This document shows, one piece after another, positions 4,613 to 64,000 of a stretch of DNA of 64,000 nucleotides (position 1 is the stretch's first letter; every line of letters begins with the position of its first letter). This DNA comes from Dimorphilus gyrociliatus (lineage: Eukaryota; Animalia; Annelida), in the NCBI GenBank assembly GCA_904063045.1, contig CAJFCJ010000018.1:310001-374000 (forward strand). The letters are read 5' to 3'. The notes under the pieces are model-generated. The model searched no databases and had not been told where the DNA came from. It was given only the letters and a program-made list of their open reading frames with translations. The position numbers and the translations under genes were made by a program.

Positions 4613-4654
4613 TCAATAGATGTCGCTGTGTGTGATATCTGCGCCCTCTCTAGT
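4613..4654. promoter_or_regulatory. CTCF-like motif pair (forward TCAATAGATGTCGC, weak reverse at 4641-4654)
   Basis: Partial match to CCRSYAGRKGGCR at the LZTS/FoxF junction; shares CAATAGATGKCGCTG with the 22167 site. Confidence 0.35.
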
Positions 4655-5411
4655 ACGATTGTTTTAAGCTATTCTGAATTTTTTTACGGATTTACTGAAG
4701 ATATCAAACTTAATAATTGATTACAGTTTTGATATACTTTCATCGAAGGACCACAAGTGAAATTTTTGGACGTTTAGCAGCTACTCTCAGCTCAAATTTT
4801 TAGTACATTAGTAGTATATTTTTTGATCTATTCACTCAGATTCTGTGTAATTAATACAATATAATTTAATAAGGTGAAAGAAATCTTTGTTACTTAGGAC
4901 CAGAGCGATAAAAATGTGCGTTAGACAGACAAGTCGGACGAAGAAAACGGCTCGCAGGCAGCCAAGTTAGACACGTTTGGCGCAATGTGGTTGCGTTTGG
5001 TGGTCACGCGTACTTGCCAAAGCCGACTTGCAGCATTCGCCTAATGTCTGTGCCAGATGCAAAATGTCCGATTTTGCTCGTCTAATGAATTCATCAACAC
5101 CGTCCCTGCCTTTGATCTTGATGAAGATAAGAGTGTCCTAACGTCCACTGGCCTGCAGACGTTTCATTTTTAAACAAGGTGTTTTGAGAAATTCTCACCG
5201 CCATGCATGCACTGGCACATTCTTTCCTCGTCAATATTTACGTCTAACTGTCCAGTTTGCTTTTCATCTAATTCTGCTGGGAGATGTAGGTATATATATA
5301 TCCGCACGTAAAATATAATTTGAGAATTAAAGCAAACGAGATTTTTTGTATTTCGAACACGAGCAGGAAAACGTTTTTTCTTCTTATAAATATATACAAA
5401 AAAATATATTA

Positions 5412-5420
5412 TGGGTGGTC
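5412..5420. promoter_or_regulatory. Perfect GLI consensus site TGGGTGGTC
   Basis: Exact 9-mer about 70 bp 3' of the FoxF stop; 1-mismatch copies (TTGGTGGTC) at 4997-5005 and 8677-8685. Confidence 0.5.
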
Positions 5421-5486
5421 TTGTACGCGTTAGAGAGCGACCGGCGTTTGTAGTTTGTCAAAGATGCGGTTACGTGAATACTGCTG

Positions 5487-7644
<2,158 letters not shown>

Positions 7645-9070
7645 CTATTTAAATGAGGCCAACTTTTAACCAACCAGCTACTAGTTTGTAGGGCGAGTCC
7701 AAAATAAAAAATTCGGGGGTGTCATCACATTTGATATCGGATGTTAAAACGTTTTGGCTCGGTCGCTTGCAGTCCAACCAACTGGAAAATTTATTTTACC
7801 ACCCTTAGCTGCCGAAAACTTAACATTTTTTATAGTTAATATATTCTACAGGGAAAATTATACAAGTAGTTTGATTTGTTTTCTCAGATTCTGTGCCGTA
7901 AACGCATAAGCAGGCACGCGCCTCAAGAGAGCTTCTGGTCGTCTTTAAGTTGATAACGCACTCATTTCTTAATCCTTTCATCTATTCGCCACCTGTACAG
8001 TTTTCAAAGGTTGGGGAAAGTTGCTTTGCGCACTTTAATACACTAAACGATTAAATCTTGAGAAAACACACATACTGGGAGAGGGATACTAATAATTACT
8101 CTTAACAAGAATATTATACCAATACAATATGCATAAATTTTTTTAATGGAAATTTCAAAATTAACAAGCAGTAGAGAAGCTTCTTGATGAAAACGTATAC
8201 GGACTGCGCGCAAGTCGGTTTATCTCTTCCTGGTTCCTGCGCTGTGTCTAGTTGAGTGATGATATGTTGCCCCAGCATCAAATTCTCGCTTATCTTCCTT
8301 CAACCGATTCTTTTGTCATTTATCACGGCATAGTTTGTTGCTTTTATCGCTTACGCTGTTTTTTAACATGCAACTTTTGGCGCGTTGCTTCATTTATTAA
8401 AAAAATTATAAATTGATCTCTCAAATGAAAAAAATTGAAAATTACGTTGAGCATCTTAGATATTTCGAATTCATTAGAAATCAAGTTTGGTTGACGCAGA
8501 CTTCGCACAGCTGCATCAACAGTGCACACAAGCTCGAGGCACCTTACACAATCGCCTGCAATCGTAAATGGTTCAGAAAACGGCGCTAATGTCAGACCGG
8601 CCGTCACTTGATATAACGTAAACACTTACAGCCTCTTGACCGCTGTCCACTAGCCACGTGTGTTCTTGTAGCTCCATTGGTGGTCATTATCAAAGTTGTC
8701 TTTCATTAAACTGGTATAGGAAAGAGAGAGGAATTCATATATTGAATTTAAATTTTTTTGACAAGTGAAAACATTATATGCCAAACAAAAATACTGCGAA
8801 ATTTATTCTATAAATTTTGCTCATCAACCTGTATAATATTAAAAAGAGTACTGAGCAATAACTTAAATATGTTTAAGGACACTAAATAATCGTATATAGG
8901 ACCAAATCATGAGATTGAGCGTGGTATATAGGCCTAAATCAGACTGCGTTGATTGTTTATTTACAGAAAAGCAAACGGTTCTCTCTCAGCTATTCGCACA
9001 GACGAATCTTCTCTCTCTAATGGTTCCGTTAATGGCCACGCTATTGAGTACTTTTTTCTTTTTTTTTCAG

Positions 9071-11514
9071 AAGCATTCTCCAGAATTATTACGAATGTTT
9101 TTTTTTGATTATTCAAAATGTGTAGGTTCTAGGATAATCAAGTTAGTAATATTATGGAAAATTAGATAGTTCTAGATACTTGTATTCATACGACTCTTAC
9201 ACAACATACAGTATACCAAGTCTATAACTTGTATATACGTACGGAACATGTCAAATGTCACAAGCATGTTTATTTTGTTTTGAATTTATAGTCACCGAGA
9301 CAGTAGAACCAGAAATAGACCCTGAAATTCCAGAAAAACTAGGACACTTTGTATCGTAAAATGTATTCTTTGGTGTTACATGAGAAAAGATTTTATAATT
9401 AAATCAAACAATTATAGATTGAAGGTTTATGAAATGTACTTAAAACTACTTCCTGGGGAGAATAGGTTTATGTATTCCATAAAATAAAACTGTGCTACCA
9501 ATAGATATCATAACTCTTTAGCTATTTGAATAAGCTATTCGTAAAATAATAATCCTTTTTGTAAAGCAAAATAGGCAAATGTATCTATCTAAGATATTTT
9601 TTAACTATTGTTCTCCCATCAAAAGCTACAGCTATAACTTTAAATGCTTTTAACTATCACACAAAACAATAAAAGGAAGACTATTTTCATCGTAAATGCT
9701 GAATAGAATGCTGAACAAAATGCGCATATCTAAAGAAGAATACTGGTCAAGTTTAAACATCAATGTAAAAATTACTTAAAAGTTGTTGCTTAAAATTCAA
9801 AGCACTCGTACAGCCATCTGTTGGCACAAAAGAGGTACAAATTCTCAAGAGAACTTTAGAACGTCGGTAAATCCTATTTCTTGCCAAATCATTGTTTTTG
9901 TTTATTAAGCACACAAGTGTATAAAATAAAAAAAATCCGATCGGTTTCTTAAATAAAAGAACAATAGAAGATTTTATTAAGTCTGTGATATTTATTATTT
10001 TCTTGAGTTATCTTTTTGTATTAAGATGAAAGTTGTATGGAATATCCAACTGGATTTCAGGGGAAAATCACAATTTTTATTATTATTGTATGTTTAATGA
10101 TATCTAACAACTGTTTTAACAGGTCAAAAGTTTTAAAGACCAGAAATGATTGCAAGATGGCTTCTATCTTCTAATGCATTTGCGGTCCGAGGAAACTAAC
10201 TACTCTTGGATGAAGATCTCCCTTAAGAATGAATTTTTTGGAAGTAAGATACGAGTAAAACATGAAGACGAGAATATTGTGTGTATCAATTTTAAACAAA
10301 TCGCTAAGAGTAATTATTATTTAATATTAGATCTTAGAAACTGATGTGTACTCTTTTAGTTTCTTCATGAATAAATTTTACCTCTCATACTGCAAAATAG
10401 CATTATTTGAAAAAGAATTTAGAGGAAGTGAAACTGGAAGCCGAAAATGAACATATTCAAAGGTTTATAAACATAGGATAAGTTATACTTGTGCATAAGA
10501 AAAATCTTTGAAAAAACACGTTCCGTCCGCGTACAAACAGATATACATGATGCATTCTGCAAGTTGGTATATATTACTACTCTCCATTGAAGTTATACAA
10601 AAGTTCCCTAGAGCTCTGAGATATTAACAATGAAAACACAGAGAGAAATATGTTCTAGCCAATGTGGGTCAATAATAATTAATTGCACTAAATTACTAAA
10701 AAAGAATGCAGTATTTAGCGGGAAAACAGGGCTGCTCTGGAATGCAGTTCGATGAGTACTTAACCCATTCCGTAAATGAGAGAGCAAAAATATCTACCGC
10801 TGCCCTCGAAGAAAAGATAATTCAGGATAATTGGTAAAAATTTTCTTTCAAAAACCAAAATGTTAAATAATTTACACGACGGTAAGAAGTGACAAATATA
10901 TGCTCTTCACAAGATAAAACTGTATTTGTAGGCAAACTACAAAAACAAAATTTTTCCCCTTAAAAAGAAATAACATTGGGCTAAGATTTATTATCATTTA
11001 ACAAAAATTTTTAATAAGTGAATAATAACTATTGATAGCTCAGTCTAATAAAATTTCTATCTTTTAAGCTCTTGATTTAATACTGATTTCTATACAAACG
11101 CCATCTTTCAGCAGAAACAGTAACTATTAAAGTGACGTCATCTCGTGGACAATCCGAAACTAGTCGAGTAAATAAATTTTTCCACAGTTCAGACCGCTTT
11201 TCCTGTTAATGCTTAATAAACTAAATTCATATTTTTCTTGTTAGATATATCAGAGCACTAAACTAATGTATCCTACCTCGTGTTTTAGCAAATGAATTAC
11301 AAAATATTTATTCCATAATATAAAAATTACATGAAAATGTTTTATTAGCTTAAAATAAAAAAGGTAGTTTTATAAAAATTGTACCAGAAAAGATTGTTTA
11401 TCATAGTTTTCTCTTACAGATGGCGTTCTACTCAAAATATCTTCTTTCATGGCAAAAGGATATGACGTATTCTACAAGCTTGAAGTCACAGGCTTGCAAT
11501 TTGACACCATTTGA
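9071..11514 (+). other. Candidate orphan gene made of micro-exons (unresolved model)
   Basis: Phase-compatible GT-AG chain 9071-9121, 9176-9210, 9292-9355, 9418-9465 gives an open reading SILQNYYECFFLIIQNVYLYSYDSYTTYITETVEPEIDPEIPEKLGHFVSLKVYEMYLKLLPGEN. Further exon-like pieces lie at about 9707-9866, 10400-10460, 10712-10833, 11112-11167 and 11420-11514. No homology recognised; start and 3' joins unresolved. Confidence 0.3.
9811..9824 (-). promoter_or_regulatory. CTCF-like motif, reverse (CCAACAGATGGCTG)
   Basis: Two mismatches to CCRSYAGRKGGCR; lies between FoxF and Sp6-9. It also overlaps a possible splice acceptor of the orphan gene candidate. Confidence 0.4.
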
Positions 11515-12235
11515 ATAATTCCTGGGATTAGAATACTTCATTCACAAAGTCCTATTGAAAAATTTGACTGAAAATAATTATCCTTTCTTATAATAATTGC
11601 TTAAACTTTCGGTACTTTACAGAGTTCCTATTGTTGTTGAACTTTGAAGAACAATACTTTATTAGCTTGTTCAACTTCAAAGTATGTTAATTAGCATTTT
11701 TTTTATTTCCTAAATTTTTTAATTAATTAATAATCTATTTATGTTAATTTAAGTTAAGATAGATATACCGATTTATATAATCAATTTCAAAACTATACCA
11801 TTTATGTTTGCTTTTAACGTTAAGAATTAGCGAAAAGTTTTTCGAGATCACTATGTTCAGTTAATTGTAAATCATACAGAAATTCAAGGAGTTAATTGTC
11901 CCAAGAATTGTTACATTTATACAATAGGTATAGAGCATTTATAAAATAGACTTTTCAAGAGTCCAAATCATTCGACTTAAGTCAATATATCTTTTGAAAA
12001 ACTACCTTTCAGCCATCGTTAAACCATAGATTGTTGCAATTTTGTTTTTCAATCTTCTTCGACTCAAAATCATTGCAAATATTCTATAATTCTCCAATGA
12101 AGATCAAAATAAGACAACTACTCAAATCGATAGGATGGAATTTATTAACTATGATAGTATATACTGTTTATGCATATTCTAAAACAACATCACATTTACA
12201 ATAAAAAAAATCTATATTTATACAGGTTGTACAGG

Positions 12236-13587
12236 TCATGACGTAGGTCTTGAAGGAGGTGAATTCGGTGTGGAATCGGAGTCTGAGGCGGTTTCCTTTC
12301 CCTCTTTATGCGTTTTGACGTGCTTTGAGAGATGGTCGGAGCGCATGAATCGCTTGTTGCATACTGGACAGGCAAATCTCTTCTCTCCTGTATGGGTCCG
12401 TAAGTGTCGTTGTAATTCGTCGGAGCGAGTAAAGCGTTTACCGCAGAACAACCAGTTACATACGAATGGACGTTCGCCTGCATATACAGAGATTTTACTA
12501 TAACTATCCCTTCTTATATCTTTCTACCACTCAAGAATTTTAATTTTAGTAATACACAGTTATAAAGAATAGAATGGCAGAATTTTATCGGCTAACACTA
12601 TCACTATTTTTAAATTGACTACAGATGGCACCACTGCTAGTAGGAGACGCGCGCGAAATATGTATACTCGTTCTGCGACTTTACACACAAAGACAGAAAT
12701 AAAAGAAATTTGGAAAATAAGAGTATTTTATTATCAGAAATCTTACCTGTATGCCATCGTAAGTGGGCCTTCAAATGAGACGTTTTATTATAGACCTTTC
12801 CACAACCTGGAATGTGGCAGGAGTGTATATTCCGCTTTCGCAGGTGAACGCCGGCAGGGCCTAGACGATCCGCTTCCTGGCAGTTGGGGCAATCGCACGT
12901 CGCTCTTCCTGTGTAACGCCTTTGGGAACGGGGAGACGGCATATTTGATAACGGACCATGAGTTGGTCGGGATAGGAAGACATCAGCCGAACTCTGACCA
13001 GAGGTTGTTGATGGCAACATACTCTTATAAGTGTCCTGTAGTAAATGTTGACTACCGGTTGGTAATAAACTGGCGTGTGTGGAAGACAGCGCCAAAGCTG
13101 AGTAATCCGGAGAAGTTGTTGAATGATAGTTAGTAGGTAGCTGGAGGGGTGACGTCGCATGCATGTCAAATGCTGACCAGCTCGTACCGCTGGTTCCACT
13201 AACTTCCCATGGCCAACTTGCTGTAGCAGCCGTGCTACAGCCATGATCTTTCATAGCTCCCCAACAGTCATAAGCTGGATGAGTTCTCGTATAAACGCTC
13301 AGTTGAGCCGACGCCTGATCACGTAGAGTGTCCGATTGACAATGCTGCAGCAATTCAGGAGGATAGGTAGACTTTGGCGTAGGATTATTCTGTGCACAAG
13401 ACGGAGATGTTCGAAGATGTTGAGCAGGCGGTGACGGTACGCCCGAAGAAGTTGTAGAGGGGGATTTCTTCCAAGGGTGAAACCCCTTTCCTATAGCTGC
13501 ATCTGCGAGAGGTGGAGGAGTTTTCGCTGTTATTTTGTTACACTGCGCTGCCAACATTGCTAAAGGAGCGCCAAGAGCCGATGAATC
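12236..13587 (-). CDS. Sp6-9: Sp6-9 (Sp8/Sp9/D-Sp1 class) zinc-finger transcription factor; exons 13587-12747 and 12477-12236, short first exon unresolved
   Basis: Sp box [13 protein letters not shown], Btd box [15 protein letters not shown], and three C2H2 fingers ([25 protein letters not shown] / [25 protein letters not shown] / [23 protein letters not shown]). Phase-1 intron ACAG|GTAAGA...ATGCAG|GC. Confidence 0.95.
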
Positions 13588-16500
13588 CTGAAAGTGACAA
13601 ATCGGTCGCAGGTGAAGTCAATTAGCTATCAACGCTACAAACACACCACACGTCAACAGGATATGATTAACTCATATTTTCCTGCGTCTTTCCTAATTAG
13701 CTATACTTCCTCTAGCAATACACAACTATACTAACGTACGCCATAATTATTGCATGCTAACGAAAATGTGAAAATTGAGAAGGAGGGCGGCGGCTCGCAA
13801 TGACCCAGAAAATTCTCAATGCACCTGTTTCAGAAACATCAAAATCGTAAATCGTTCTAAATTTCTCTTAAGCTAATCGATATAAACGCGCTTTAGCTCG
13901 ATGAAAGGAGACAATCGACGATAATCACGACATAAACTTTATAGCTGAGAGAAGAGCTGGTGTGCGACAAAGACGAGGGAGAGAAAAAAGAGAGATTAAA
14001 CCCTCCCCGTAATGCACATTCGAATCGCGCAGCTGTTAGCGTATAATTAGATATCTTTACTATCTACAGCTTATCGGTAGTCAGCCTGCTGTAGAATGTG
14101 GCCACAACTAATTCATCAAGTCGATGTCCATTTCAGAAATTGGCTCGAAAATCTAGTAAACGAGTTAGACGGCCAACCGCAGTATAGAGTTCTACTTGTA
14201 TATGCATGATCGACAAACGTCTCCATGCCCTATTCGTCGATGCATACGGGCGCCGAATGGCGTCCATCAGTGATTTGCGGCCGATATTGCAGTCGTGTGA
14301 AAACTGTCAGATGTAAGCTCATTATTGGCGTCCCGACTGAGCAAAAAGTTAATGAGTTTGCATGTTGCAATGCCTCCCAAAGGAAGTTGGCGGAGGATTA
14401 TACGTTTCCTTCTTTTCCATATGAGTTTTATACAATCTGGGTTTATCACTTTGTACCGAACGGCGCGAGACTACAAGTGCTACTTGAGCGTAGTAGAGTA
14501 TGTTGACAAAGTTGAACGTGCCGCCTAAGGGCCGACTACTTAATCAGTATATATACACATACGCGTGTTCGAAACGTGTATAAGATCGTTTTATATAAGT
14601 GTACACATTTTTTTAGATTGCAAAATTCGGTCTACACTGATATAATCGCTGTTTTCGACATCAATCATTTACTTGACGTTCTAACTAGTTGAAAGAATAG
14701 AAGTCTTTTGAATAGACCCGCTTGCACCTGTATGTATATCCACAAAAAGGCTATGGCTATACCTTTTTCACTATATATAATTCATCCATCATTTACGCCT
14801 TTAACTTTATCCAATCATTCGAATATTCTCACCCGGGGTGGAAAAGAGCGTGCGCCTAACTTCTACTTCAAGATTCCAACAAACGAATTTATTATTTGTT
14901 ATACACTTATAAACGCTTATATATGAAATTTTACAAAGGCGAAATAATATATTTTTTTACTCTAGACTATATTTTCTTAAGACTAATAAAAAAATTTGAT
15001 AGCAAAAGCTAGAGCCATTTATCGCTTAACTCTAAAGTTATAAAACTAAGTATAAAAAAAATATATTTACCCCTAGCACTGCAGAAGTAGCCATGTACAA
15101 GAGACGGATATATAGTGAAAATATGTGGTTGAGGCGCTGGGCGCGTTAGAGACATGCGGCTCTCCTAAGCGACCGCCTAGCGGCCTCGATAGAGATCGAC
15201 TCCAGCCAATCAGCGTTTAGTAAGTGTTTGATTGACAGTTGGCTAGGCGCTGCCAGCGAACTGCAAAGAACGCGAAAGACTGCATGCAAAAATTCATTGA
15301 CTGCTCAATAGCAAATTGTACTCCGGCTCCAGGCAGTCGGGTTAACTTAACAAGTTTACACGAATCGAACGGTGTGTGTTATTGAGATATTTACTAGGTG
15401 TACATCTACATAGACCAAAATTATGATACATGTATTAAATATCGTTTGATAAGTTTATAATTAGTGTAGTTCACAAAGCAGTTTGGTGTGAGAAAGTTCC
15501 TGAGGCGCTCGCACCTGGTCTTCTACCGACGTTTCCATAGCTACGCCCTATACCATTCTTCACCATCATAATTAACGCGCTATGGCGCATACTAATAATT
15601 AATACGTATGTACATTAATTACATGTTGCTCGAGCACCGCTTGCTCACGTTCCAAATACCTTTACAGACAATCGAATTCATTTTGAGTTAATTCCACCAT
15701 GGTCACTGTCATTTTAACTAAGATGCATTTTCGTGTATACAAATTATATCTTTCAAATCTTTAGGATGTATACATGCATGCTTGCATGGAATCTTTCTAC
15801 ATGAAAAACTTGAATGAAAACTTTCTTTTTTCATGTAAAAAATTCTTTCAGTGTCATTTCGGTTTGACTTAAATAGGCTATTCCGTACCACATACTTAAA
15901 CGAAGAGGGTACTTTAAATAAGATAAAATCAAGAGCCAAGCGTGACGCCACACTAGCTTACGTAAGAGTTTTTTTTAAATCTGTTATAAGGGACACGGTT
16001 TATTTTAGACAATACTTTAATGCTTTAATGTGTTATATATTATGGGAGTACAAGAATTTTTACGCTGTTTATAATTGAGGACATTTTCCAACGTTCACGC
16101 TTCGAATATATCGGTATAAACACGCCGTATATGGAATAAATCACGCGTAATGGAATCGGAATTATCGAATGCACATATATAGGGTAGGGAAGAAGTGGGC
16201 GAGAAAAGGAATCTAATTAAAGAGTAGTCAGTCGGATTTTTTGCCACTTTTACAGGCGAAACGAAATGTTTATATCGCTTATTCATGCACTATAGCGACT
16301 AAACAATTTTCAGTATACATTATGCAAAAGGTCGATCGGTCGAAAGCCAGTAGTCTGAAACAATGATAGCTGATTTATGACGTAATGACAATGATTAGAG
16401 AGAATTATATCAGTTACAGGCAATTATAGAGACGCGCTGAGCGCCGAATTCCGACCCGATCGATGTATAACGTAAAATGAAAAACGCCGATCGTTGATTT

Positions 16501-17916: not shown

Positions 17917-17929
17917 CGCCCCCTGGTGT
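17917..17929 (-). promoter_or_regulatory. CTCF-like motif, reverse (ACACCAGGGGGCG), overlapping tandem GC boxes
   Basis: One mismatch to consensus; part of ACGCCCCCTCACGCCCCCTGGTGT upstream of Sp6-9. Confidence 0.5.
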
Positions 17930-19753: not shown

Positions 19754-19756
<3 letters not shown>

Positions 19757-19811: not shown

Positions 19812-19813
<2 letters not shown>

Positions 19814-19870: not shown

Positions 19871-19884
19871 ACGCCATCTGCCGT
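19871..19884 (-). promoter_or_regulatory. CTCF-like motif, reverse (ACGGCAGATGGCGT)
   Basis: One mismatch to consensus; sits at the junction of the Sp6-9 upstream region and the UBE2Z 3' end. Confidence 0.55.
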
Positions 19885-22166: not shown

Positions 22167-22182
22167 ACAATAGATGGCGCTG
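22167..22182 (+). promoter_or_regulatory. CTCF-like motif, forward (ACAATAGATGGCGCTG)
   Basis: Intact AGATGGCGC core, 10 bp after the CHCHD7 stop, at the start of the Mox domain. Confidence 0.5.
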
Positions 22183-22768: not shown

Positions 22769-25320
22769 ATGGAGCCGAGACTCTACTCATCAGCAACGAC
22801 AACGCCAACTGCCGCTTATAATCATCATACTCCTTACCACCACGCCATACCTTCACTTTATTCTTCGGCCTATGACGCGTCTTGGACATCGTTGACATCA
22901 CCTTATGGGTTTTACACATCAAGATATAGGAATTTTGTTTCATCATCTTTTGATTCTAGAATTATCTGTCAATCCGCTAATTCCTGCCACGAAGATGAAA
23001 CAAGTGAGAAGGGTAATTATGTTTATTTATTGAACTGTACTATCATTGATGAAATTCTTGTTGGAAGAAAGAACTTATAGTATTAATATAAATTTAATGT
23101 AAAATCTTTATTTTAATTCCTATCAGATTTTAAGTCAGGTTAATTACGATCAATTTGTGTGTAAATAAACTACAAGTTAGGACTTTGAAATTTCTATAAA
23201 TATGATAATAGGTTGTATAGCTTTTGAAATACGAAGAAAGAAGTAGATATTTAAGTAATTCTCTGGTGTTTTCCACACTCAAAACGTTGTGACTTTTAGA
23301 AGACTCTGAAAAAAGATTTTTAGATTTTGTTGGAAAAATATTTTCTTACAGAGACATTTTCAATCATATGAAAACGCTGGAAAATATTGGTAATTAAAAT
23401 TAGAGATCCTTCAGGATCTAACCATTTAACATCAAATACAGCCTCAAAGTTATTAAAAGAGAGAAAAATAAAACATTTTTAGATTAGGAAAGAGATCAAA
23501 ATATAAACGTAATACAAGTTAAAGATAAATATAAAAGAAAAGTATATTTTACATCAAAAATATTATGAATTACACTTGAATATTTCCAAAGGGTATTGCC
23601 ACTTTATATTTTGTTTCAATTTTTGTAAATCAGTGATTTAAGTTTCAAAATATTTAAAAATTAAGCCACTGCGTCGACTACAATTTTCTTAACTTTGAAA
23701 TAAACTTTTTATCACAGTGTTACTATTAAATATTATTAAAAAATATTAAATACGTATTTACTATTTATTCAAAAAGAATAACACTTAAATATTCTCTAAT
23801 AGACAAGTCTGAATTCAGTTAAATAAAATTCTATATATATATTTGTTAATTTCATATTATAGTAATTTACACATAATAATAGAAGATTTATTAGTTATAA
23901 TGAGTTTCGTAGGTATACTTTTACGTGGCTATACTGTAATCCTATAAACCGTAACTAGAATTTAATTAAAGTTGAGCTTAACTTGGTCCTTTGGGAGTCA
24001 AATAGTTTATTTATCTCGTTACGATGTGATTTTCACTCCTAAGTGATTAATTGCCATGTCTTTAATTTCATTATCACTAATGAAAAGTTAGATTCGACAA
24101 TACTCACTTGCAGCCTAATCATAAAGTATTCGAGTCACCTAAAATTAGCCAGCACAGTAAAATAAAATGCGCGCAGTGCGCATGGTTATCACTACCTAGG
24201 GAATATTATCGGCATGTCATCAACGCCTCGATTGCAAACAAGTCGTACAAGTTCTGCTTAGTGTCACGTGAAAAAATAAACATATCAGGCGAATAAAAAA
24301 GCTACGCAATCACGTCCCCTTTGTTATTTTCCTCAACAGCCGCCATTGTTGGCCAGCAAGCCTCTACTCCATCCGACACGTTTCCGCTCGACCTCAATAG
24401 TAAACCTCGAAAGGAGCGCACGGCTTTCAGCAAACAACAAATACAACAACTTGAAAAAGAATTCTCATCCCATAACTATCTTACTCGTCTGAGGAGATAT
24501 GAGATAGCAATGGCTTTGGACCTAACGGAGAGGCAGGTTCGTATTTTTTGGATCAAAGTCAATCATCGGCGCAACACGTGCGCCAATTCAAGTAGTAATA
24601 CAAACAAGCGTAAAGGCGCCTATTGCCACCTACTGTGAGTCGTCGTTTGAAACGAGAGATGACTTGTGATGTGCCTCTTTTCTCACCTTCATGCATCTGT
24701 GAGTGAAGGAGGTTGTTGGTGCGCTTTTTCTTATAACAAAGCCCAGCTCTATTAATGAGCTCAACTCTGACTTTCAATTTGTTTTTAAAATTATTACATA
24801 AAAGAGGGATTCTAGAATAACAAATGAGTGAGCTTTTGTGATAAGTTTATTTTTGCTAGATGTAGGTAGTAGTCATACCACATAAGAATTCCATTTCTTA
24901 AAAATTTTATTGAATAGTATCTCATATCTAATGGTATCGAAACAGTTTGTACTACTTCAAGGAATTTGACTTCTAAAATGGAGTAAAAACAGAAGTCTTT
25001 AGGGTATAAGCATAATCAAATAAGAATAAATTGCCAACCATTTCTGTTATCTATGACAGGCACCAACTTTAGGGGTAATTAGGTAGCAAAATACAAGTGC
25101 GATAAATGTTATCTGACATTGACTGACAGTTGTAATTGACTGTTTCATCATCCAACAGGTAAAAGTCTGGTTTCAGAATAGAAGAATGAAATGGAAGAGG
25201 ACAAAAGGTGCGCAAATGGCTAAAGACAAAGTTACTGGGCAACTGAAACCTGTAATAACCGGCTTACCACCTAAATTAGATTGTGACGATGAGATAGAAG
25301 AAGAGGCCAGACTCACCTAG
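22769..25320 (+). CDS. Mox: Mox/Meox homeobox protein, 3 exons (22769-23003 or -23012, 24340-24536, 25159-25320)
   Basis: [50 protein letters not shown]|[17 protein letters not shown] is diagnostic of Mox. Splice phases are consistent; there are two same-phase donors 9 nt apart in exon 1. Confidence 0.95.
24623..24636 (-). promoter_or_regulatory. CTCF-like motif, reverse (ACAGTAGGTGGCAA)
   Basis: One mismatch to consensus, in Mox intron 2. Confidence 0.45.
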
Positions 25321-26236: not shown

Positions 26237-26269
26237 GTGCCATCTATAAACACACTGTAGATGGCGCAG
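26237..26269. promoter_or_regulatory. Divergent CTCF-like doublet (reverse GTGCCATCTATAAA, forward ACTGTAGATGGCGCAG)
   Basis: Inverted repeat GTGCCATCTA-N11-TAGATGGCGC between Mox and the GPR158-like gene. Confidence 0.5.
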
Positions 26270-33838: not shown

Positions 33839-33853
33839 AGACCAGATGGCGCT
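33839..33853 (+). promoter_or_regulatory. CTCF-like motif, forward (AGACCAGATGGCGCT)
   Basis: Two mismatches to consensus; upstream of UPP, facing the Dlx domain. Confidence 0.45.
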
Positions 33854-34498: not shown

Positions 34499-34535
34499 CC
34501 GCAAGATGGCACAAAACAAAATCGCCACCTAGTGG
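34499..34535. promoter_or_regulatory. CTCF doublet: forward CCGCAAGATGGCAC (34499-34512) plus perfect reverse CCACTAGGTGGCGA (34522-34535)
   Basis: One perfect and one 1-mismatch consensus site 9 bp apart at the UPP/Dlx junction. Confidence 0.7.
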
Positions 34536-47620: not shown

Positions 47621-47635
47621 CCACTTGGTGGCAGC
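47621..47635 (+). promoter_or_regulatory. CTCF-like motif, forward (CCACTTGGTGGCAGC)
   Basis: One mismatch to consensus; at the Dlx/NR4A junction. Confidence 0.6.
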
Positions 47636-47914: not shown

Positions 47915-47928
47915 ATGCCATCTAGCGG
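47915..47928 (-). promoter_or_regulatory. Perfect CTCF consensus, reverse (CCGCTAGATGGCAT)
   Basis: Exact CCRSYAGRKGGCR match in an extremely AT-rich context, 500 bp 3' of the NR4A stop. Confidence 0.7.

Positions 47929-48413: not shown

Positions 48414-53237
<4,824 letters not shown>

Positions 53238-53533: not shown

Positions 53534-53539
<6 letters not shown>

Positions 53540-53582
<43 letters not shown>
53540..53582. repeat. (AT)n microsatellite, about 21 units
   Basis: Directly visible. Confidence 0.95.
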
Positions 53583-53586
<4 letters not shown>

Positions 53587-55176
53587 GCATACAATCCAAA
53601 AACAGCTTCAAAGTAAATCGGTAGAGTACAATCAACTGGTATTTCTTGATTAACTTTGAATATTTTTTATTTTACGCATAGAATAAATCAAAAGAAAATC
53701 GAATTTTGCACCAAAGCAAATGAGGGTGTGGTAAATGAGATGCATAAAAACTACAAATCTGAGCATCAATTTGGAGGCGCGACTTGAAAAGGAGCCTGCT
53801 AAATCCTTGAAATTCGACGAACTTCCAGCTGTGAAAGTTGAGAGTCCAAAGACATTTCCGAGCTTACAAATCTTTGAAGTGAAATGCACCTGGATATTGT
53901 CATACATCCTTTGCAGATTATTGAACTCGTGTATCAATTAATGTCTACTGGAACAGATAAATTTGAAGAAAAGGTATATTATCCCTCTTATCCTTTCACA
54001 ATTTCACGCACATTTAAATTTTAGGAGATGATGTTGCATCGAATAAGTTCGAACGAAAAATGGCAGAAAATATCACTGAAACGCGACTTTAATACGAAAA
54101 TGTTAACCAAAAGGGTAAAGGCTATGGCATTCGACGGCGGGTGATAATAAGTCAAAATTCTGCTTTGAAAATATCGTACTGACATTTGCATGCGGTATAT
54201 TTGTCTTGTTATAATATTCTCATTTATTGTTGTAGTTTATATACAATATAAATATCATTACATTTGGTGAAAACTCCTAATTAGTAAAGAGGTTATAAAT
54301 GCTTTCTTGTTTGCTTGTAGTCTCTTATCGTGACGTCTGCTGTTATACTAAATGCTATTACTCTGCATGAAAACAAATTTTTATGATGGTTATATTTTAT
54401 TACTTTGTCACCACTTTCAGAACAGTTTACCCGTATCATTAGAGTAAAACGAGTAGAGGACTCGTGCAATTCATAGTTTCGAATGCTAAAGAAAAAATTG
54501 AGAAAACTCGCTTTTCTACAGCTAGTAATAACAGGAAAATGAAATTATTCGAGAGTCATGGAATAAAGAATCCATCTCTTACACGTGCCGACATTAAAAA
54601 ATTTCCCCTAGAGATTTCTTAAACTGCCCCTCATTTCCAGAAAACGACACATTTTTGCATAATTAATTCAACTGTATAGTTCGATAAATTGTTGACAATT
54701 TCCTAAAGAGCAAAGTTTGCTAGTGAAAATGTCACTGCGGAACTACGACCGACAGCAATGTATGTGGTAGATTACTTATAAATGAGAATTTATTAGATAA
54801 AGCACCCATCCTTATATAAGCAAATACATCTATGTGCATAAAATACAGCTAGTTTTTCTATCAGTTTATAGAATACGTTGTTTGTACCTTTCTTCACATA
54901 TCACAAGTTTAGAATAACTGAAAGGTGAAAAGTATTATAAATGTAATGTGGTAAACCATATGATTTAACATTTATTTTTAATAAAAATGTTCCAAAGGTG
55001 GGAAACAGATTATTCATTCATTCCAAGTGAGTGATAAAAAACTGCATATTTTACATTTTGAGTAAAGGCAATTAATTGTCTGACGTAAACTTTAATAAAT
55101 ATTTCTATTTTACTGATATTAGAAATGTTACACTATATTAGCCAAGAGATAGCAGCACTGAAAAAATGTCCGAACC

Positions 55177-55190
55177 ATGCCCTCTAGTGG
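55177..55190 (-). promoter_or_regulatory. Perfect CTCF consensus, reverse (CCACTAGAGGGCAT)
   Basis: Exact consensus, between the two candidate NR4A promoters. Confidence 0.7.
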
Positions 55191-57739
55191 TACAGCGTAT
55201 ATTTATTTTTTGCTGAAATACATCTAGTTTATACAATGTACAGAACAGAATATATAAAATTCTTTAAAAAATATAGCAGAGTTTACATTTGTAAATAATT
55301 TTCATATTATGCTTAGGATAGTACAATACTATAGGTTTTTTTAATACTTTATGAGTATGCGAAATACAACACATAAATTTTACACCTGAAACATTTGTAT
55401 CAACCGTTGGAAACGCGCTGACATTTTAGACGGTCCTCATTTGCAGATGAGGCGACACCGAACGTGTCTTAATAATAACTTATGATCTTTCGTTCGTCTT
55501 TTACATAAACACCAAAAAAGGCGTAAAAGGGAATTTGACGGAGAAATATGTCATGAATATTTAAGTATGTGTGACTGAAGTGCAGTAGACAAGTACAATA
55601 TTCAACATATTCATTGTCTATGTTATTATTTCATTCGGTTCTCTAGTCGATTTCACCCAGAAACGACTAAAGTTTTTTACATATTCTGTGAATATGTAAT
55701 ATATACTATCGAAGCTGATAGCTAAAGAGACCAATCGCTTATGAACTCAATGGGTAATAGAAAAGATATTTTGTAATTAATAAAGGGTGAGAAAAAACCG
55801 TTATAAGTGACTATAGAAGTGTTATGTGCGTAGAATAAAGAGGAAAAAACTCACTTGGTGAATATCTGTTTTCACAATTATTTTTCGACATCAAAACGCC
55901 ATCCTCGCAGATAGGGCTCATACTTCGACCGTTTCATATAAGGAAATGACGCTTGACGTCTCCTTTTCAATACAGTACATATTTTATTCAAGGAACTTGG
56001 CGTTTGAACTAATTGCAAGACTAATCAATCAGTCAAGCTTTATAATAAAATGTACATATGCATCTTTCATTTCGTTTGGCAGTGAACGTTCAACTGCCCT
56101 CTTAGATTGTCCCTATCTCTTATGTATGAATAGAACAGTATTTGTGTAAGTTAATTGTCTGTTAAGTCGAATAGTTTAAAGTGGTTCCAAAAGCTAGTAC
56201 AAGAGTGGAACGAGTGAGGCCAGGTGTGTTGGAAAGAAATAACACAAACATTCGCAAGATACATTCTACTGCATTGCTCATGCTGCTGCTTCTCTCTCAG
56301 CAACTTTTCAATTGCCTTTTTTTTACAAAAGAAAGTAGAAGCAGAAAAAGTTATAATGAACAAATATGACATGACGAAGAGCTCCAGGTCATGTGATCAT
56401 ATTCAGCCAATTACGAGTGAGATAAGAGCTCAACGCTGGGACAATGACGACTAGATGCTTACAGTTCCAATTGCAGTTAGTTCAATCTAACTGCAGAACA
56501 AGATTCGCGATCGAATATCAAAAAAAGAGTTGGAAAGCCCGTTAAAAGTGAAGTAATGCGCTAATTTACACCGGCAGTCTGTCCTAATTAATTTACACTT
56601 GTTAAAACATATATGTGAAAAAGGAACATTTCACGGGAATATTTACCATGTCCACCCACATACGTAGAGAGCGCATAACACGAATGCATTAGAAACAGAC
56701 GCTGTCGAACTCATTACGATCAGATTAACACCGCATTATCGAACAATTGCGTCAACAGATGACGTCATATTCTTTTTTCTTTTCTTCCATTCAAAGCAAA
56801 TCTTAAAATTTTACAAATTTTTCGTTTGCATATCAGGTGTTATGCTCTTTTAGACTCTATCATTTCTCCTCTTCACTCTAGCTTCGCACCTGAGCTATTA
56901 CTATCTTCGTTCACTAATTAGAAGATATATGGTAAGTTGTATGTCAACGTGTATATAAAAACCAATGTGTTGCTGAGAATTTTTGAGACGGTGAGAGTAT
57001 TGGCTATTAGTGACTTGCCGTAACTTACTTTGAAACTATTAGCGAAGAGAGTGGCCCTAAGGCTCCCCTCTCTTTCCTTCTGGCACACTCTTCCGCATCA
57101 CCTCTTCTTTCATCTACAGTTTAACTCGTTGTTCTAATCGGGCTACTTACGAAAGTTTCTTTCAATGACTTGTATTTGACTTGTATTTAAAATTTTTGAA
57201 GTCTTTATAAAAATTCTGACAATATGTATTAGTAATTAGCGAACTTATCCAACAGTAAATGATCACAGTTGTAAGTGATGCATATACAACAAAGCGTGAA
57301 GCGGACACGAAAGCTTTTTATTAGAATATTTAGTGCATAGAATCTCTCTTCTAGCATTCTTTGATAATAAAACTCAATGGGTATCCAATTTTTAATCGCT
57401 ATCATCGATTGTATCGAGTCATATGTATTTGTATAGATACTCAATGCAGAAAATTTGTTTCCGCTATTATTTAGCTATTTCTTTTTGCAGTTATGTTTAT
57501 TTAATATTTATAGTGATACACAAGCTATATGTATGCATTCATACGATAAGTTTCTAATGTCAGTCAAGTTTGTGACATTTGCTAGAAGGTCGAGGTTGTC
57601 TACCTGAGCAAAAATTTGCTATAAGGTAATGTCAAAGAATCTCTAAGAAAGGTCAATAGGTGCGAAAGTAAACAATGAGAGTTTACAACAGAAGTGGGTA
57701 ATCCGAAAAAAAGAGATATTAAAAGAAATGGTTACTTAC

Positions 57740-57842
57740 GATTAGCTATAACTGAACTGTAGACTACTTCGTCCAAAATGTCTTCCTCCGTATCAACTTT
57801 AACGCGAGTTAGAAGAAAGTGATCGGAGCGAGAAGAATGCAT
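57740..57842 (-). CDS. NR4A: Candidate alternative first coding exon of NR4A (distal isoform)
   Basis: ATG 57842, MHSSRSDHFLLTRVKVDTEEDILDEVVYSSVIAN, perfect donor C|GTAAGT in phase 1, in frame with the phase-1 acceptor at 52166. Confidence 0.55.
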
Positions 57843-57922
57843 GCATTACAACCTTCGCCTCTCCATTCCTTTCTACTTTCGTAAAACTTTTCCTCGAATT
57901 CTCCACCAGAAAACTCTGCATC

Positions 57923-57943
57923 TGACGTCACGTGATGACGTCA
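57923..57943. promoter_or_regulatory. CRE-Ebox-CRE composite (TGACGTCACGTGATGACGTCA), probable NR4A distal promoter
   Basis: Two perfect CREs with an overlapping TCACGTGA, 80 bp upstream of the candidate distal exon ATG. Confidence 0.6.
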
Positions 57944-60900
57944 CTGCGAATGGAATAGCCATTAAGGGGAAAAGAGGAACGAACTAAGTGCAGCCGTTTA
58001 ACAGACAAGAGCGCATGTCTTCCTACATTACCCAACAACTTTAATATAAACTCACGTCTAATTTGTATGTAAACATATTTATATATCCAAAATCTGCTTA
58101 AAATCAATTTCTTGCCAATATACATAAGCCGTGTTTTACGCTCATGCAGAAAATTAGCTTTAGGGTTTTCAGTTTATTTTCTCGACCCAACCCTGCTTTA
58201 CGCTACTCAGTTTTTTGATTAGAATATAAATAAACCCAAATTTGACCCTGTCCTTAACCCATAAATAGATATTTCAATTCAATTCTCTGTTGGGCAAAGT
58301 AAATTACGAAGATTAGTCAAAAAAATTAAAAGCGATTGTTTATTAACAAGATGGGCAGTTGCAAAGAAGAGTCAAGATGCCTGGGGACAAATTCAAAGGG
58401 CGTTCAAGCGAAAAAAAAACATGCATGCATGGATTGTTAGACAGAGAACAACTTCTGAATCTTAAATGCAAATTATTCATTTAGAAATATGTACTGCACA
58501 TCCGAGTATAGAATGTTGTTTCTTTATTTACCCGGTAACTATGAAAGTGTGATATTTCCATAATATATTTATTGTATATATAAAAAGTGGATACTAATGA
58601 ATATACTTTGGAAGGAATTTTCTTCATTTAATTAATATGCATGTATTAACACGGAACAATAAAATTCTTTAATGCACTTTTAGAGCTTTCCGTGCATATT
58701 CCTTTCTAAACACAAGTTTGAACCTTCTTGGATGATATAAATGCAAAGGAAAATATAAAAAAAAAACCGATAAACAGCAACTCGCGATGAAATGCAGAAG
58801 GAAAGGTCAAAAAAAGATGGAGGTCTTGAAGGTCAATTGAACTGACCGCGAAAATGATAGAAAATTCTTTATAGTGGAAATAGATTTTTGATGTTTGAGC
58901 ATATGAATTTTCCTTCAGGCACATTGAGTGTCACAAATTATTTTCTTTCGACATACTTCTCTCTGATTTTTTGCCGCTGCTTATCGGCCACTTGAGATCT
59001 GTTAACGACTTACTCAAACGTTTTGCAGATTATAAGAGAGATAAGCAGAATTTTTCACCATGCTCCACTCTCATGCAGATATATACAAAAATAAAGAGGC
59101 AAACAGGCGGTCACGTGTAGAGGAAACGTTTACTTTTCCAGCAGCGATCATCAAGGTAGCTTACGTCATCAGTAAGAGACTCATAATGCTTGATTATAGT
59201 TTTATACGTGATAGCGTTTGCGTTTCTTTGTTTTCCTTGCATGGTCAAAAAATTTATGCAAAAATTAATATGTTAGATGAGATAGCTTAATATAAAGCCT
59301 CAACTGTTAATTGAATGATGTAATAATTGTAATGCATATATAATTTAGCCAGACACCATCTGAAAACGGCATTGTTGACATTTTGAGTGAGACGCTAATT
59401 TGCACTAGCATCCAGTAGCTTCATTGTTATTAGTGAATTTTCCAGTTTTTGCAGTGCGGTTGACATTTCGGTCGAGTATATCTCTATACGCTCATTAAGC
59501 CGCTCTCTCATTTGCAAATATTATTGGTGGTTAATTGCAATAGCGCATGATTCTAGAAAGTTGTAGAAGAAAAAAAATCAGTATATTTTCGCTTCTCAAA
59601 TATATACAAAGTGGCGAACAATTTAGCCCGACATCCAAACAGCCACTTCACCCCGTATGTACCCTGCTATTCTGGAATGCTACACATCTGTGTACAAATA
59701 GTCTAGTGGGATATGGACTCATGCAATCGGTTTTATCTAATCGAGTCTTCTATTATGGCACCTGATTTATTTTTACTTATTTTTTTAGTGATATATGTAA
59801 AGGATTATATATTTTATTCACGTTTACGGTTCGAAACTAACCAATAGATTTTCTAATCCAGCAACGCATCAGTGCAACTGTAAGAAATAGTATCTGCGGA
59901 TGAAAAGATGAGTGGCAACAGCTGATTCAACCGCAATACATTGGATGCAACATTGCCGAAAACTTTTCTATATTCTTTTCCCATTATATATCATATAATT
60001 ACATCATATTTTATAGTGTAGTAAACACCGAATTCAGTAGGCCTATTAGAAAGGTGAACTTTGTTTCTAATAGAAATTAGGAAGGATCGAAAGGCGGTAA
60101 AAAAAACATCCTCTGGCTGTTGTGTGTATACACGTGTACTGACCATTTTCTTGCTTTACGGAAACATGAAAAGACATTTAGGGAATGCTTGTAGCGTCGT
60201 ATCGCTATCGGCTATACTGTTTACCTTTCGGTTTTTATTAAGTGTGTAAGCAAACTGCCTTGCATACAAATTTTTTCAAATTTCAATAAAAATCTTATGT
60301 GAGTAGCAAAAAGTTATAGCAAACGCTTGTCCGATAAAAATATCTTCTTTTCATTGAGGAACTAGAAGAGGTAAAATTTAATGGAGCGAAAACTAGAGGG
60401 AAATTATTTGAAATCAGTTTTGATGTAGATAATTAGAGATCATATTTTTTTATATGTACAGCGCAAATCCTTATTACTACTTGTGCTATATTAAGTGAAT
60501 GGGTAAGAGTTTCGAACGAAGGTTAATACAGGATTAACTTTTTACTGATAATTATTGAATTACGATATTAATGAAATTTTTATGACATATAAGAAATATA
60601 CCGTTACTTTAACTTTTTTTTGGCTTTTATTATTCCAAAATAAATAGAGAAACTGCTCGATGTAATTTCTCTTGACAACCCATGAAATATCCCGTTAACA
60701 CGTTATCAATGGCAGGTACATATAGAGATGGGCAGTCAAAGAAGAAATGCCGGAGGCTCAGACTGTAAATGTCAGTGAGCTGATGATCAATTGAGATATA
60801 TCATAAATATGTCTTAATCTTTTTCGACTTTTATCCACGTTTCTACCTTGCACCACCAACTCAATCTAATTAGCATAAAGCGATTATATGACGACAGTAT

Positions 60901-62473
60901 GTCAGTTCGGATCGAAAGGCGTTAAGGCAGACAAGTTCTTTCCGGCTTTCATCTCCCTTGTAGCGCATTTGACCTTTTCCAGTCTTCAGGTGCTTCCTCA
61001 TTCTTGATGAGGCATTGCTAGATGCTCGATCAGACGATTCCCCTGTGCAATATGGGGGAAAGCTCATTTTTCTGTTGAGACATTTTCTAGTCCAAATAAT
61101 AAGTTTTGCTGTTTTCTAGATTCAATTTTCAAAATATCTCATACCTTATATACGCATTGCATATCTACGATTTCTTCTCATATTTTCCAGTAAGCCACTC
61201 TGGCCTATCGCCTGCGCAATGCGCGCTTGTCCTCAAAACCAGCTGTAAACTCACTTCAGCCATACGTTTTCTTTTTCATTTCCCGTTAAATAATTCCTTA
61301 TCCGATCGAATTGAAAACTATCCTCCGCCTGTTCGAGTAGACTCTATTCTGACTACTAAACTAACATTTATAGAGGAGAGTGTGGACATTTGTTTATTTG
61401 ATCTTTACCATTCAAATGTCAAGACATTCAGGCAATCTTATAACTAGTAAGATGTCTTTTTCTGGCATTTTCTTTAGAAAGTACGAGTACGCTCAATTGT
61501 TTTTGTGAATATATAATAGATAGTAAATGTGCAAACAGTAGCAGAACTCTTTAGTTTCGTGTAGCGAGAGGGCAGAGGAGAATTTCGAGCTACCTTATAG
61601 ACTTGAATTTCAGTTACATTAATTACAACACTCCGAGGCAAACAATATTTTATTTGACAATTTTGTATAGGCTATCTAATTTTATAGAACTTATTAGAAC
61701 TTTATGAAACAAAGCCTTATCAGATTAGTTTTTTAATGATTGTTTTAATGCAAAATACAACATTCAATGAATTTGCAGTTCTTTTTATATTCAAACTTCA
61801 CTAACCTTTATTTTATTTTTGCATTAATTTAAGAGGAAAAGCTCAATATGCAAGACCATATTGTTGCGATAGAGCTAAGCTGACCATGCATGCGGCGAAA
61901 AGAAAGCAAAAACAAATCAAAAATTGATAGGATCGACTAAAAACGACGTATGCCTGCCAAAACAAAGTCTACCAAAGAGATAAGTGAACATCTCTTCCTT
62001 TTTAACGCGTACCACTCGGCACGAGACCATGTTGCTGCTCTAATCGCATCCATTTCTACATTCAAAAGTAAATTACTTCTGAAGGCGGTAATGTACCCTG
62101 ATATATCTTTATCTTCGGTCTTATCATTAGTAGATAATCACCTCTGTTTTTAATTGGCGTCGACATCAGCTGATATTTTTCCTATGTATTATCACAGTCA
62201 GATATAGAACAAAGGGTTGAAGTGATAATTGGCACACAATTATAGGAGAGTCACTATTATTTTAAAAAAAGATAATAAGCACAGATACATAATGGTGAAT
62301 AGATATATTCATAAATTTATTATGAATTTTCTGTAACTATTATTGTTTCCTCAATTTGATTTTATCCAGGCCATTTAGTGGAATTATATTTAATGTTTAA
62401 AACTGTAAGAGAGCACAAAGCTGCTTTCGACGATTAAAGAAATGCTAACGTTGTTATTCGTCGTTGATAAAAG

Positions 62474-62487
62474 GCACTAGATGGCAT
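62474..62487 (+). promoter_or_regulatory. CTCF-like motif, forward (GCACTAGATGGCAT); weaker copy at 62674-62687
   Basis: One mismatch to consensus, at the far end of the NR4A upstream region. Confidence 0.55.
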
Positions 62488-64000
62488 TTTAGTAGTTGAA
62501 GCAATATCCAGAAGATGGAGTTATATGTCACTCTTTTTCTTCCTCAATACTCAGAAAAAATTTAATGAATTAAACCACTTATAAGAATGATTCTCAATTG
62601 TAGTAAAAGTATCTTAGCCAAATTTTAATGTGCGGTTAAAACCCGATATTTATCTATTAAATTTTCTAAACAAACTTCAGATGGCACTAGTTTTCATTTA
62701 GAAGCGCAATATTTTTGGAGCAATCGAATGCCTTGGGATTATTTCCCAAGTAAGAAACAGTGATACGCCTTGAATTTTTATAACATGTAATTTTAATTAT
62801 TTATCAATTGTATATTCTTAGTCATGAAACTGCCGTTCTAGTATATCGTTATCGTAAATGTCAATTTGATGCTTGCAGATAGGCGAAATTATTTTGTTGT
62901 ACTTTTCTTCGATCGTAGGTTTAAATATATTATTGGTATTCGACACTCAAGAGGATCCAAAGGTGAAATTTGTCGACGGTACTGCTGGTTTTGATAGCAT
63001 TTTAAAACTTTATAGGTTGACTCTAAGAAGTGTATTGTAAATCGTCTATAGTAATATAGCGAGAGAAGGAGGTGTAGCAAAGGACAAAGGACAAATATTT
63101 GCTTGAAAGCCTATCAATAAATCCACAAAAGAAGCAGGATAGCTTTCAGCCTCGTTTTGGCCACTTTGTAGCAGACGATTCTTTTTCAACGGCTGGATCA
63201 CCAACTTTTATTCGCCCCTTTCTTCAATTAAAATAATATAGATATATTGTTTTCATATTGAACTAGTGGGAGTTTTACCTGGATGAGACTTGAAATGTAC
63301 AAAAATTCAGTGAGTTTTTAAGTTTCTTTTTCTAAAATTCTCTTCTCACTCATCGAGTGGGTTAAATGAAGAGAACTGACAAGCTTATGCAGTAATTGCG
63401 TCACAATAACATTTATATTATATAACTACTCCTCTGATTTGAAATTCTCTCGAAATCTTAAAAGACAAAGGATGCCATTAAGATGACTTCGTGGTGGTCT
63501 TTCATTGTTAATAAAGTGGCTCATTTACATGAGGAACTCATACCAATCAAAACCAAATTTAAAAGACCAACTCAGAGATCTTTCATCTTAAACCGCTTTT
63601 AGGTGAACAGTCTATATCAAACCAGGTGGGACTTGCATAATCTTAGAATTTTGGATGCGACTTCATTCGCCCATCAATCACAGACTGCCCGCATCTTGTA
63701 TTTTCTTTAGGCCTGACTGGTATCGTATGACACTTTTGTTGATATAAATATGAAGCGAGTGGACACTGCACGCTCTTGTGCTTGACCGAACGGATGACCG
63801 GCGCTTGAAAAGTGGCAATTACAGGCGCCAAAATGACGTAAATTCTCGCTAACTTTCCTTAATCGCAATCTGTTCTATAACTCAGCTCTTTTTTGCCTTT
63901 TTTCTTTGAATGCGCAAGCGCCGAAGATGAATGAACATATATAAAAGACCTACGTATATACTTTGATGCGCATTTCCGTCTTTTTGCCATATAATAATTG

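Follow-up and report, generated by a model that had tools for sequence, protein, structure and literature searches.

CTCF-type sites under purifying selection at gene-territory borders in a compact annelid genome

We analyzed a 64,000-nucleotide stretch of the genome of the annelid Dimorphilus gyrociliatus (contig CAJFCJ010000018.1; a position in the record equals 310000 plus the position in the stretch, which is called the window below), in which the transcription factor (TF) genes FoxF, Sp6-9, Mox, Dlx and NR4A lie among ordinary genes. The window is enriched in sites that match the CTCF motif, and these sites are under purifying selection and concentrated at the borders between gene territories. 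The interpretation that we favor, with a probability of about 0.5, is that they are binding sites of the CTCF orthologue which have been kept by selection and mark gene-territory borders in a compact genome, most likely as boundary elements. An earlier note on this DNA had gone further and proposed an oriented grid of CTCF sites enclosing each TF gene in a small domain; the orientation part of that proposal is treated separately below. Sites are named by their first position and strand (F, forward; R, reverse), and all coordinates are collected in Table 1.

The window has a G+C content of 34.8%. The perfect consensus CCRSYAGRKGGCR occurs three times in it, compared to an expectation of 0.01 for the whole window, and both figures agree with those of the earlier note, whose 16 listed motifs were all found in place. 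With up to two mismatches, 30 matches were observed and 8.2 were expected. The core AGATGGC is present 22 times instead of the expected 4.7 times, a count that was equaled in none of 100 shuffled sequences, so that the enrichment also holds against shuffled controls. Other variants of the core, namely AGGTGGC (5 occurrences), AGAGGGC (7 occurrences) and AGGGGGC (3 occurrences), were not enriched. In D. gyrociliatus, the motif thus takes essentially the form YAGATGGCR.

To describe the motif outside the core, a logo was built from 22 conserved sites that had been chosen by the 7-base core alone. It reads [C/A]C[A/T]N[T/C]AGATGGC[G/A][C/T]. At the positions that had played no part in choosing the sites, C was found at -4 in 19 of the 22 sites, C or A at -5, T or C at -1 in again 19 of 22, and G or A followed by C or T after the core. 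The logo and the three perfect 13-mers match the CTCF core consensus (CCAsYAGrkGGCrs), and the sites are CTCF-type. In a previous study, a CTCF orthologue was identified in the D. gyrociliatus genome (PMC7854359, Supplementary Fig. 8), and the CTCF motif was the commonest one in ~10,000 peaks of the assay for transposase-accessible chromatin (ATAC) of this species, where it was the top motif reported by HOMER (PMC7854359).

For comparison we used a relative, represented by the Logan assembly of SRR23372228. A 68.8-kb contig was found via SLC5A (88%-identical open reading frame [ORF]), and a second contig, SRR23372228_119581 (L011), which carries FoxF, was found by homology search. The relative's contigs are colinear with window positions 12158-64000 and 13-9972. 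The fourfold-degenerate sites of SLC5A show 34.5% identity between the window and the relative and are thus saturated, third codon positions show 47% identity, and the coding DNA of SLC5A, UPP and the UBE2Z-like gene reaches just 71-73%. Nevertheless, some 23 kb of DNA near Sp6-9, Dlx and NR4A, most of it non-coding, aligns to the relative at 72-95% identity, with at least 78% in all aligned blocks except the last one (63072-64000, 72%). Given the saturation of the fourfold sites, the aligned non-coding DNA indicates that these TF genes are embedded in dense constrained non-coding blocks. Constrained non-coding DNA of this density fits poorly with a proposal in the literature that genome compaction went along with the loss of most distal elements.

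Eleven non-coding sites keep their position and strand in the relative (9812R, 19872R, 22167F, 26254F, 33839F, 34499F, 34523R, 47916R, 55178R, 62474F and 62674F), and nearly all of them lie within DNA that cannot be aligned by blastn. Unaligned gaps make up 27% of the DNA and contain 7 of the 10 sites with at most one mismatch (P = 0.006). When the syntenic gap of the relative was searched for a same-strand match with at most two mismatches, such a match was present for 6 of 11 gap sites compared to 0.24 expected, a result obtained in 0 of 500 shuffles; at the level of the core, 10 of 14 assessable gap sites were retained. The same holds true for the word itself: AGATGGC in unaligned gaps was retained on the same strand in seven of eight cases, whereas the retention of all 7-mers with four G/C was 4.3%, and it ranked second among 787 words. 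In local alignments, the sites appear as islands of ~10-20 bp amid otherwise unalignable sequence. The retention of sites at syntenic positions despite saturated fourfold sites indicates functional constraint on the sites, and the CTCF-type sites are under purifying selection. No counterpart was retained in the relative for 4613F, 26237R and 47621F, nor for 3973F and 4643R, two sites missing from the earlier list.

The conserved sites are not spread evenly over the unaligned DNA. Inter-gene boundary gaps, which account for 9.8% of the DNA, hold 7 of the 10 conserved sites in the compared region (P = 8e-6), and unaligned gaps contain a site in 5 of 10 cases if they are boundary gaps and in 2 of 26 cases if they are internal (Fisher P = 0.01). 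Within 12-64 kb, six of eight borders carry a conserved site, namely those between Sp6-9 and UBE2Z, UBE2Z and Mox, Mox and GPR158, UPP and Dlx, Dlx and NR4A, and between the region upstream of NR4A and the next block. The placement at junctions between a TF landscape and its neighbor, as described in the earlier note, was borne out for the part covered by the relative. The gene order on which that description was based has to be corrected, as the UBE2Z-like gene had been overlooked and counted within the upstream desert of Sp6-9; it sits between 19871R and 22167F. The sites follow the edges of the conserved blocks closely: 19872R is found 193 bp beyond the end of the Sp6-9 block at 19679, and the 34499/34523 pair and 47916R lie 190 bp off the left edge and 450 bp off the right edge, respectively, of the Dlx block (34712-47464).

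On this basis, the sites would act as insulator-type boundary elements that separate the dense regulatory DNA of FoxF, Sp6-9, Mox, Dlx and NR4A, and the same boundaries would shield this regulatory DNA from the intervening ordinary genes (UBE2Z-like, GPR158-like, SLC5A and UPP). Some border sites double as promoter-proximal elements. Occupancy of these coordinates by CTCF and an insulating effect are predictions from the motif, its conservation and its placement.

Several points weigh against the interpretation as boundary elements. It is derived from one window, which is a small sample, and the GPR158/SLC5A and SLC5A/UPP borders, two of the eight within 12-64 kb, are devoid of a conserved site. 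Moreover, two to four of the 11 conserved sites lie close to a promoter (26254F and 33839F, to which the 34499/34523 pair may be added), which fits a role in transcription rather than in architecture (PMC7854359), and the sites counted as non-promoter could adjoin unannotated transcription starts. These last points lead to the alternative given in the genome paper, according to which CTCF binds beside annotated or unannotated starts and tunes transcription. Among the alternatives it is the most probable one, yet we consider it rather unlikely. The placement at borders would be accounted for, because promoters lie between genes, and the CTCF motif of D. gyrociliatus was found for the most part within promoters and singly (PMC7854359).

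The distances to transcript and coding starts speak for both sides. Transcript ends were taken from RNA-sequencing contigs assembled from runs of the same study as the genome. Site 26254F is located 136 bp from the ATG of the GPR158-like gene, and RNA contigs of UPP end at 33779-33783, which marks the transcript's 5′ end and puts 33839F ~56 bp upstream. The 34499/34523 pair is 120-160 bp away from the start (34657) of a low-level unannotated RNA contig, with spliced plus-strand RNA further on; the presence of this contig beside the pair makes unannotated starts possible. No RNA contig was found over 33801-34600. On the other hand, 7 of the 11 conserved sites (9812, 19872, 22167, 47916, 55178, 62474 and 62674) are at least 420 bp away from any annotated coding sequence (CDS) start, most of them 1.6-12 kb. 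Two of these, 19872R and 47916R, closely follow 3′ ends and are distant from annotated 5′ ends; 19872R is found 153 bp past the stop codon of the UBE2Z-like gene. The promoters of SLC5A and the UBE2Z-like gene carry no site, and the two clear promoter sites, 26254F and 33839F, have opposite orientations relative to their own genes. Retention across species and the position at the edges of conserved blocks both speak more for a function as borders or insulators at developmental loci than for one confined to promoters.

Three observations were made at the promoter-proximal sites. A 40-bp block just 3′ of 26254F (26286-26326) is near-identical in the relative and is probably the core promoter or 5′ untranslated region of the GPR158-like gene. 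The low-level RNA beside the 34499/34523 pair extends over 34657-35259. The unannotated spliced RNA of the plus strand comprises 36063-36349 and 36609-36915 with a GT..AG intron (36349-36609); it coincides in part with the best conserved blocks downstream of Dlx (94-95% identity) and is possibly a non-coding RNA, conserved and antisense to the Dlx side.

The second alternative is the one put forward by the earlier note, in which the sites are oriented loop-extrusion anchors as in vertebrates: convergent F and R sites would stop cohesin and enclose each TF landscape in a loop of 4-14 kb. Convergent F-to-R pairs do bracket the six units in the order in which the sites had been listed. However, this arrangement is not beyond chance, since a six-unit F...R tiling was possible in 41% of trials in which random orientations were assigned to a pool of 53 sites of the same degeneracy. 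Four of the anchors that the grid needs are weak or not conserved, 4613F, 26237R and 47621F among them, and 24623R is coding. If only conserved sites are considered, two of the six units are bracketed by F on the left and R on the right, namely GPR158-SLC5A-UPP (26254F...34523R) and Dlx (34499F...47916R), both of which agree with the oriented model. FoxF, Mox and NR4A each miss one conserved anchor, and the left anchor of Sp6-9 (11413F) corresponds to DNA that neither of the relative's two contigs covers. Read from left to right, the conserved sites give R R F F F F R R R F F, which shows runs instead of alternation, and the two sites on either side of the 7-kb conserved block at 55.3-62.2 kb, 55178R and 62474F, point outward. 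The window thus lends no support to the proposed vertebrate-like convergent insulation by CTCF and cohesin at a small scale, although the power of one window is too low for its exclusion.

Inward-facing motif pairs at the domain ends were not shown to exceed chance, given the low power of one window, and by inspection no pattern was seen between the orientation of a site and the distance to the nearer edge of a conserved block. The contigs of the relative beyond the window contained few extra sites, none of them informative on orientation and all of them lacking D. gyrociliatus sequence as a conservation filter. As each border site necessarily points into one of its two neighbors, most sites cannot test the oriented model. 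The orientation shared by both species results from common descent and is not evidence; its retention was considered as a sign of orientation-dependent function and rejected for this reason. In favor of an oriented function, the housekeeping UBE2Z-like gene has an R site on one side and an F site on the other, both pointing away from it, and at borders where a 3′ end meets an upstream region all four sites (9812R, 19872R, 26254F and 47916R) face the upstream region (P = 0.06), a trend that is a lead and not a result. Previous work reported no clear directional arrangement of CTCF motifs at the D. gyrociliatus Hox cluster (PMC7854359) and no orientation rule in echinoderms and flies (PMC13317027). 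We therefore regard oriented looping as improbable. If it were true, with oriented cohesin barriers around landscapes of 5-15 kb, the convergent rule of vertebrates would operate at about one-hundredth of its scale, and orientation-dependent insulation by CTCF would be older than vertebrates and would have been lost in flies and echinoderms. If it is ruled out, the sites would be ordinary CTCF-type border elements of the kind known from flies.

According to a third alternative, the protein bound to these sites is not CTCF but a different factor whose motif overlaps, for example YY1/Pho (AAnATGGCG) or some other zinc-finger protein. The earlier note had cautioned that the CTCF core overlaps the YY1/Pho motif, and for a minority of sites this caution stands: the YY1-like subset CAAGATGGC at 34504, 10155, 38100 and 41147 remains ambiguous, and a conserved YY1-like AAATGGCGG is present at 26307-26315 in the GPR158-like promoter, within the 40-bp block described above. 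For the conserved sites as a whole, the flanks fit CTCF. The 22-site logo does not match the YY1/Pho consensus AAnATGGCGGC, as position -1 is mostly T or C instead of A and GGC is followed by [G/A][C/T] instead of another GGC; C at -4 and T or C at -1 fit the CCAsY half of the CTCF core, which makes the sites CTCF-like and not YY1-like. Together with the three perfect matches to the 13-base consensus and the HOMER result for the ATAC peaks (PMC7854359), this renders binding by another factor very unlikely. An origin of the motifs from repeats was also considered and was rejected, since no similarity is seen among the flanking sequences of the 22 sites. That the matches are chance events selected by eye is refuted for the motif, whose enrichment and motif-specific conservation far exceed the shuffled controls, and stands solely for the orientation pattern, which like the weak sites 4613F and 47621F is at chance level.

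Several known systems resemble the sites described here. The study on open chromatin in D. gyrociliatus (PMC7854359) dealt with the same genome and the same motif class, mostly as single motifs, yet its emphasis is on promoters and it speaks against a role in architecture, whereas most of the conserved sites in the window, which is rich in TF genes, lie off annotated promoters at the margins of conserved non-coding blocks and are retained in a second species, a comparison beyond the scope of that study. In Drosophila, CTCF and insulator sites such as those at the bithorax Hox domain boundaries have a similar core (AGGTGGCGC / AGATGGCGC) and lie between regulatory domains of a few kilobases without an established orientation rule (PMC10658182, PMC13317027). 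Flies differ in having many lineage-specific insulator proteins (BEAF-32, Su(Hw), CP190 partners), while the window was compared by the CTCF-type motif. The CTCF/cohesin anchors at borders of topologically associating domains (TADs) in vertebrates share the motif, the location at borders of developmental landscapes and the housekeeping genes at these borders; they span 100 kb to 1 Mb compared to the would-be 5-15 kb here, where the convergent rule is not demonstrated. TAD-like borders of echinoderms (PMC13317027), likewise invertebrate bilaterians, are enriched in CTCF motifs without an orientation pattern, but were defined by Hi-C at 10-kb resolution, whereas the borders in the window were defined by gene order and sequence conservation. 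YY1/Pho sites have the ATGGC core in common with the sites of the window and differ from them in the flanking positions, which fit CTCF instead.

For D. gyrociliatus, it had already been published that the CTCF motif is abundant, that a CTCF gene exists and that no orientation rule is obvious (PMC7854359). What is new is the retention of the sites across species in saturated, unalignable DNA and their position, which is at the margins of conserved non-coding blocks. In the literature we found no report of Hi-C, Micro-C or Rad21 data for D. gyrociliatus. The question at stake is whether regulatory domains were already organized by CTCF in the ancestor of bilaterians and, if they were, whether this depended on orientation, and more bilaterian lineages have been called for in this context (PMC13317027). 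With a CTCF gene, abundant motifs and constrained sites, this 74-Mb annelid genome makes D. gyrociliatus a practical species for settling the question. The constrained sites at borders qualify the published view that CTCF acts mainly at promoters.

Table 1. Genes, CTCF-type sites and blocks aligned to the relative in the window. For Sp6-9, Mox, Dlx and NR4A the domain class was checked, and the family names are those of the earlier note.
Feature	Position	Strand	Basis or context	Counterpart in the relative
NIDO-domain gene	up to 1637	-	ORFs and Pfam	
Fez1/LZTS-like gene	2695-3896	-	ORFs and Pfam	
4613F	4613..4625	+	core broken (AGATGTCGC)	not conserved
FoxF	6631-7614	-	ORFs and Pfam; homologues carry the name FoxF	
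9812R (9811R in the earlier note)	9812..9824	-	2.2 kb upstream of FoxF ATG, unaligned gap	conserved; TTCCAGTAGATGGCG, same strand, mapped position 12934 of L011 (window orientation)
11413F (ACAGATGGCGTT)	11413..11425	+		falls between the two contigs
Aligned block	12158-19679		includes Sp6-9 exons	
Sp-type zinc-finger gene (Sp6-9)	12239-13557	-	ORFs and Pfam	
17917R	17917..17929	-	GC-rich ACACCAGGGGGCG	within block 90% identical throughout
19872R	19872..19884	-	right edge of 7.5-kb conserved Sp6-9 block	7487(-); 18/19-bp conserved island (CGCCATCTGCYGTCTATA) amid unalignable DNA
UBE2Z-like, ubiquitin-conjugating enzyme	20025-21474	-	annotated CDS; 305 aa, UQ_con domain	
100-aa orphan gene	21744-22157	+	annotated CDS	
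22167F	22167..22179	+	between UBE2Z-like (-) and Mox (+), 602 bp upstream of Mox ATG	CAGATGGCGCC at 9720(+), at most 1 bp off mapped position; flanks unalignable
Mox-type homeobox gene	22769-25320	+	annotated CDS	
24623R	24624..24636	-	end of Mox homeobox exon	
26237R	26237..26250	-	D. gyrociliatus only	aligned position is TTAGACTTCTCCT, without core
26254F	26254..26266	+	upstream of GPR158-like gene on the gene's own strand; promoter-proximal	CTGTAGATGGCG identical (13362+)
GPR158-like gene	26390-28783	+	annotated CDS	
SLC5A	30019-32218	-	annotated CDS; exon matches DgyrCDS11079 at 100%	
UPP	32537-33632	-	annotated CDS	
33839F	33839..33851	+	antisense to UPP	CAAGTATAGATGGCGCC, 20707+
Composite element (34499F, 34523R)	34499..34535	.	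left edge of Dlx conserved block; CAAGATGGC core on the forward strand (34504), perfect CCACTAGGTGGCG on the reverse strand (34523-34535), offset of 20 bp between the core starts	both kept (21209+, 21229-) at identical offset; surroundings unalignable
Aligned block	34712-47464			
Dlx-type homeobox gene	from 39622	-	annotated CDS	
47621F (CCACTTGGTGGCA)	47621..47633	+	core without AG	no forward core in syntenic gap 33380-33909
47916R	47916..47928	-	perfect; between Dlx upstream block (end 47464) and NR4A 3′ block (start 48078)	ACAGATGGCGCC, same strand, syntenic gap (33698-)
Aligned block	48078-62163			
Nuclear receptor, CEGCK P-box (NR4A)	48417-50587	-	ORFs and Pfam	
55178R	55178..55190	-	perfect; 420-bp unaligned gap, 4.6 kb upstream of NR4A ATG	CCACAAGATGGCA at 40818(-)
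62474F	62474..62486	+	gap between conserved blocks (end 62163, start 63072)	CCTGTAGATGGCA at 47587(+)
62674F (absent from the earlier list)	62674..62686	+	same gap as 62474F; CAGATGGCACTAG	CAGGTGGCACTAG (47781+)

Among the listed sites, the conservation of 24623R is explained by coding, as it lies in the Mox homeobox exon, and that of 17917R is uninformative because the whole surrounding block is conserved. In the composite element, the forward CAAGATGGC and the reverse GCCACCT form an inverted pair (34504-34530), and if two proteins were bound, their GGC-side ends would face each other; the left half at 34504 is equally YY1-like and CTCF-like. The annotated FoxF model evidently differs from the ORF used here, as an exact-protein look-up gave no match. 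The orphan gene at 21744-22157(+) has no Pfam match and ends 10 bp before 22167F; its model is doubtful, since it shows only 69.6% nucleotide identity to the relative.

Besides the CTCF-type core, the word AAATCAC/GTGATTT was retained in six of six occurrences in syntenic gaps. It was rejected as part of the CTCF-type motif, as it occurs in long, AT-rich gaps at a distance from the CTCF-type sites. Three GTGATTTC words occur within 110 bp on the minus strand (51119-51230), 530-640 bp upstream of the NR4A ATG; they may be due to chance in long AT-rich gaps or form a small cluster of sites. A further perfect CTCF-type sequence, CCACTAGATGGCA, is present in contig SRR23372228_108370 of the relative at 53361-53373(-), within L013, which by synteny corresponds to ~4 kb past the right end of the window. 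It is located in the desert that separates NR4A from a C2H2 zinc-finger gene (plus strand, contig positions 56031-58864), and this shared upstream desert of ~20 kb contains at least four CTCF-type sites.

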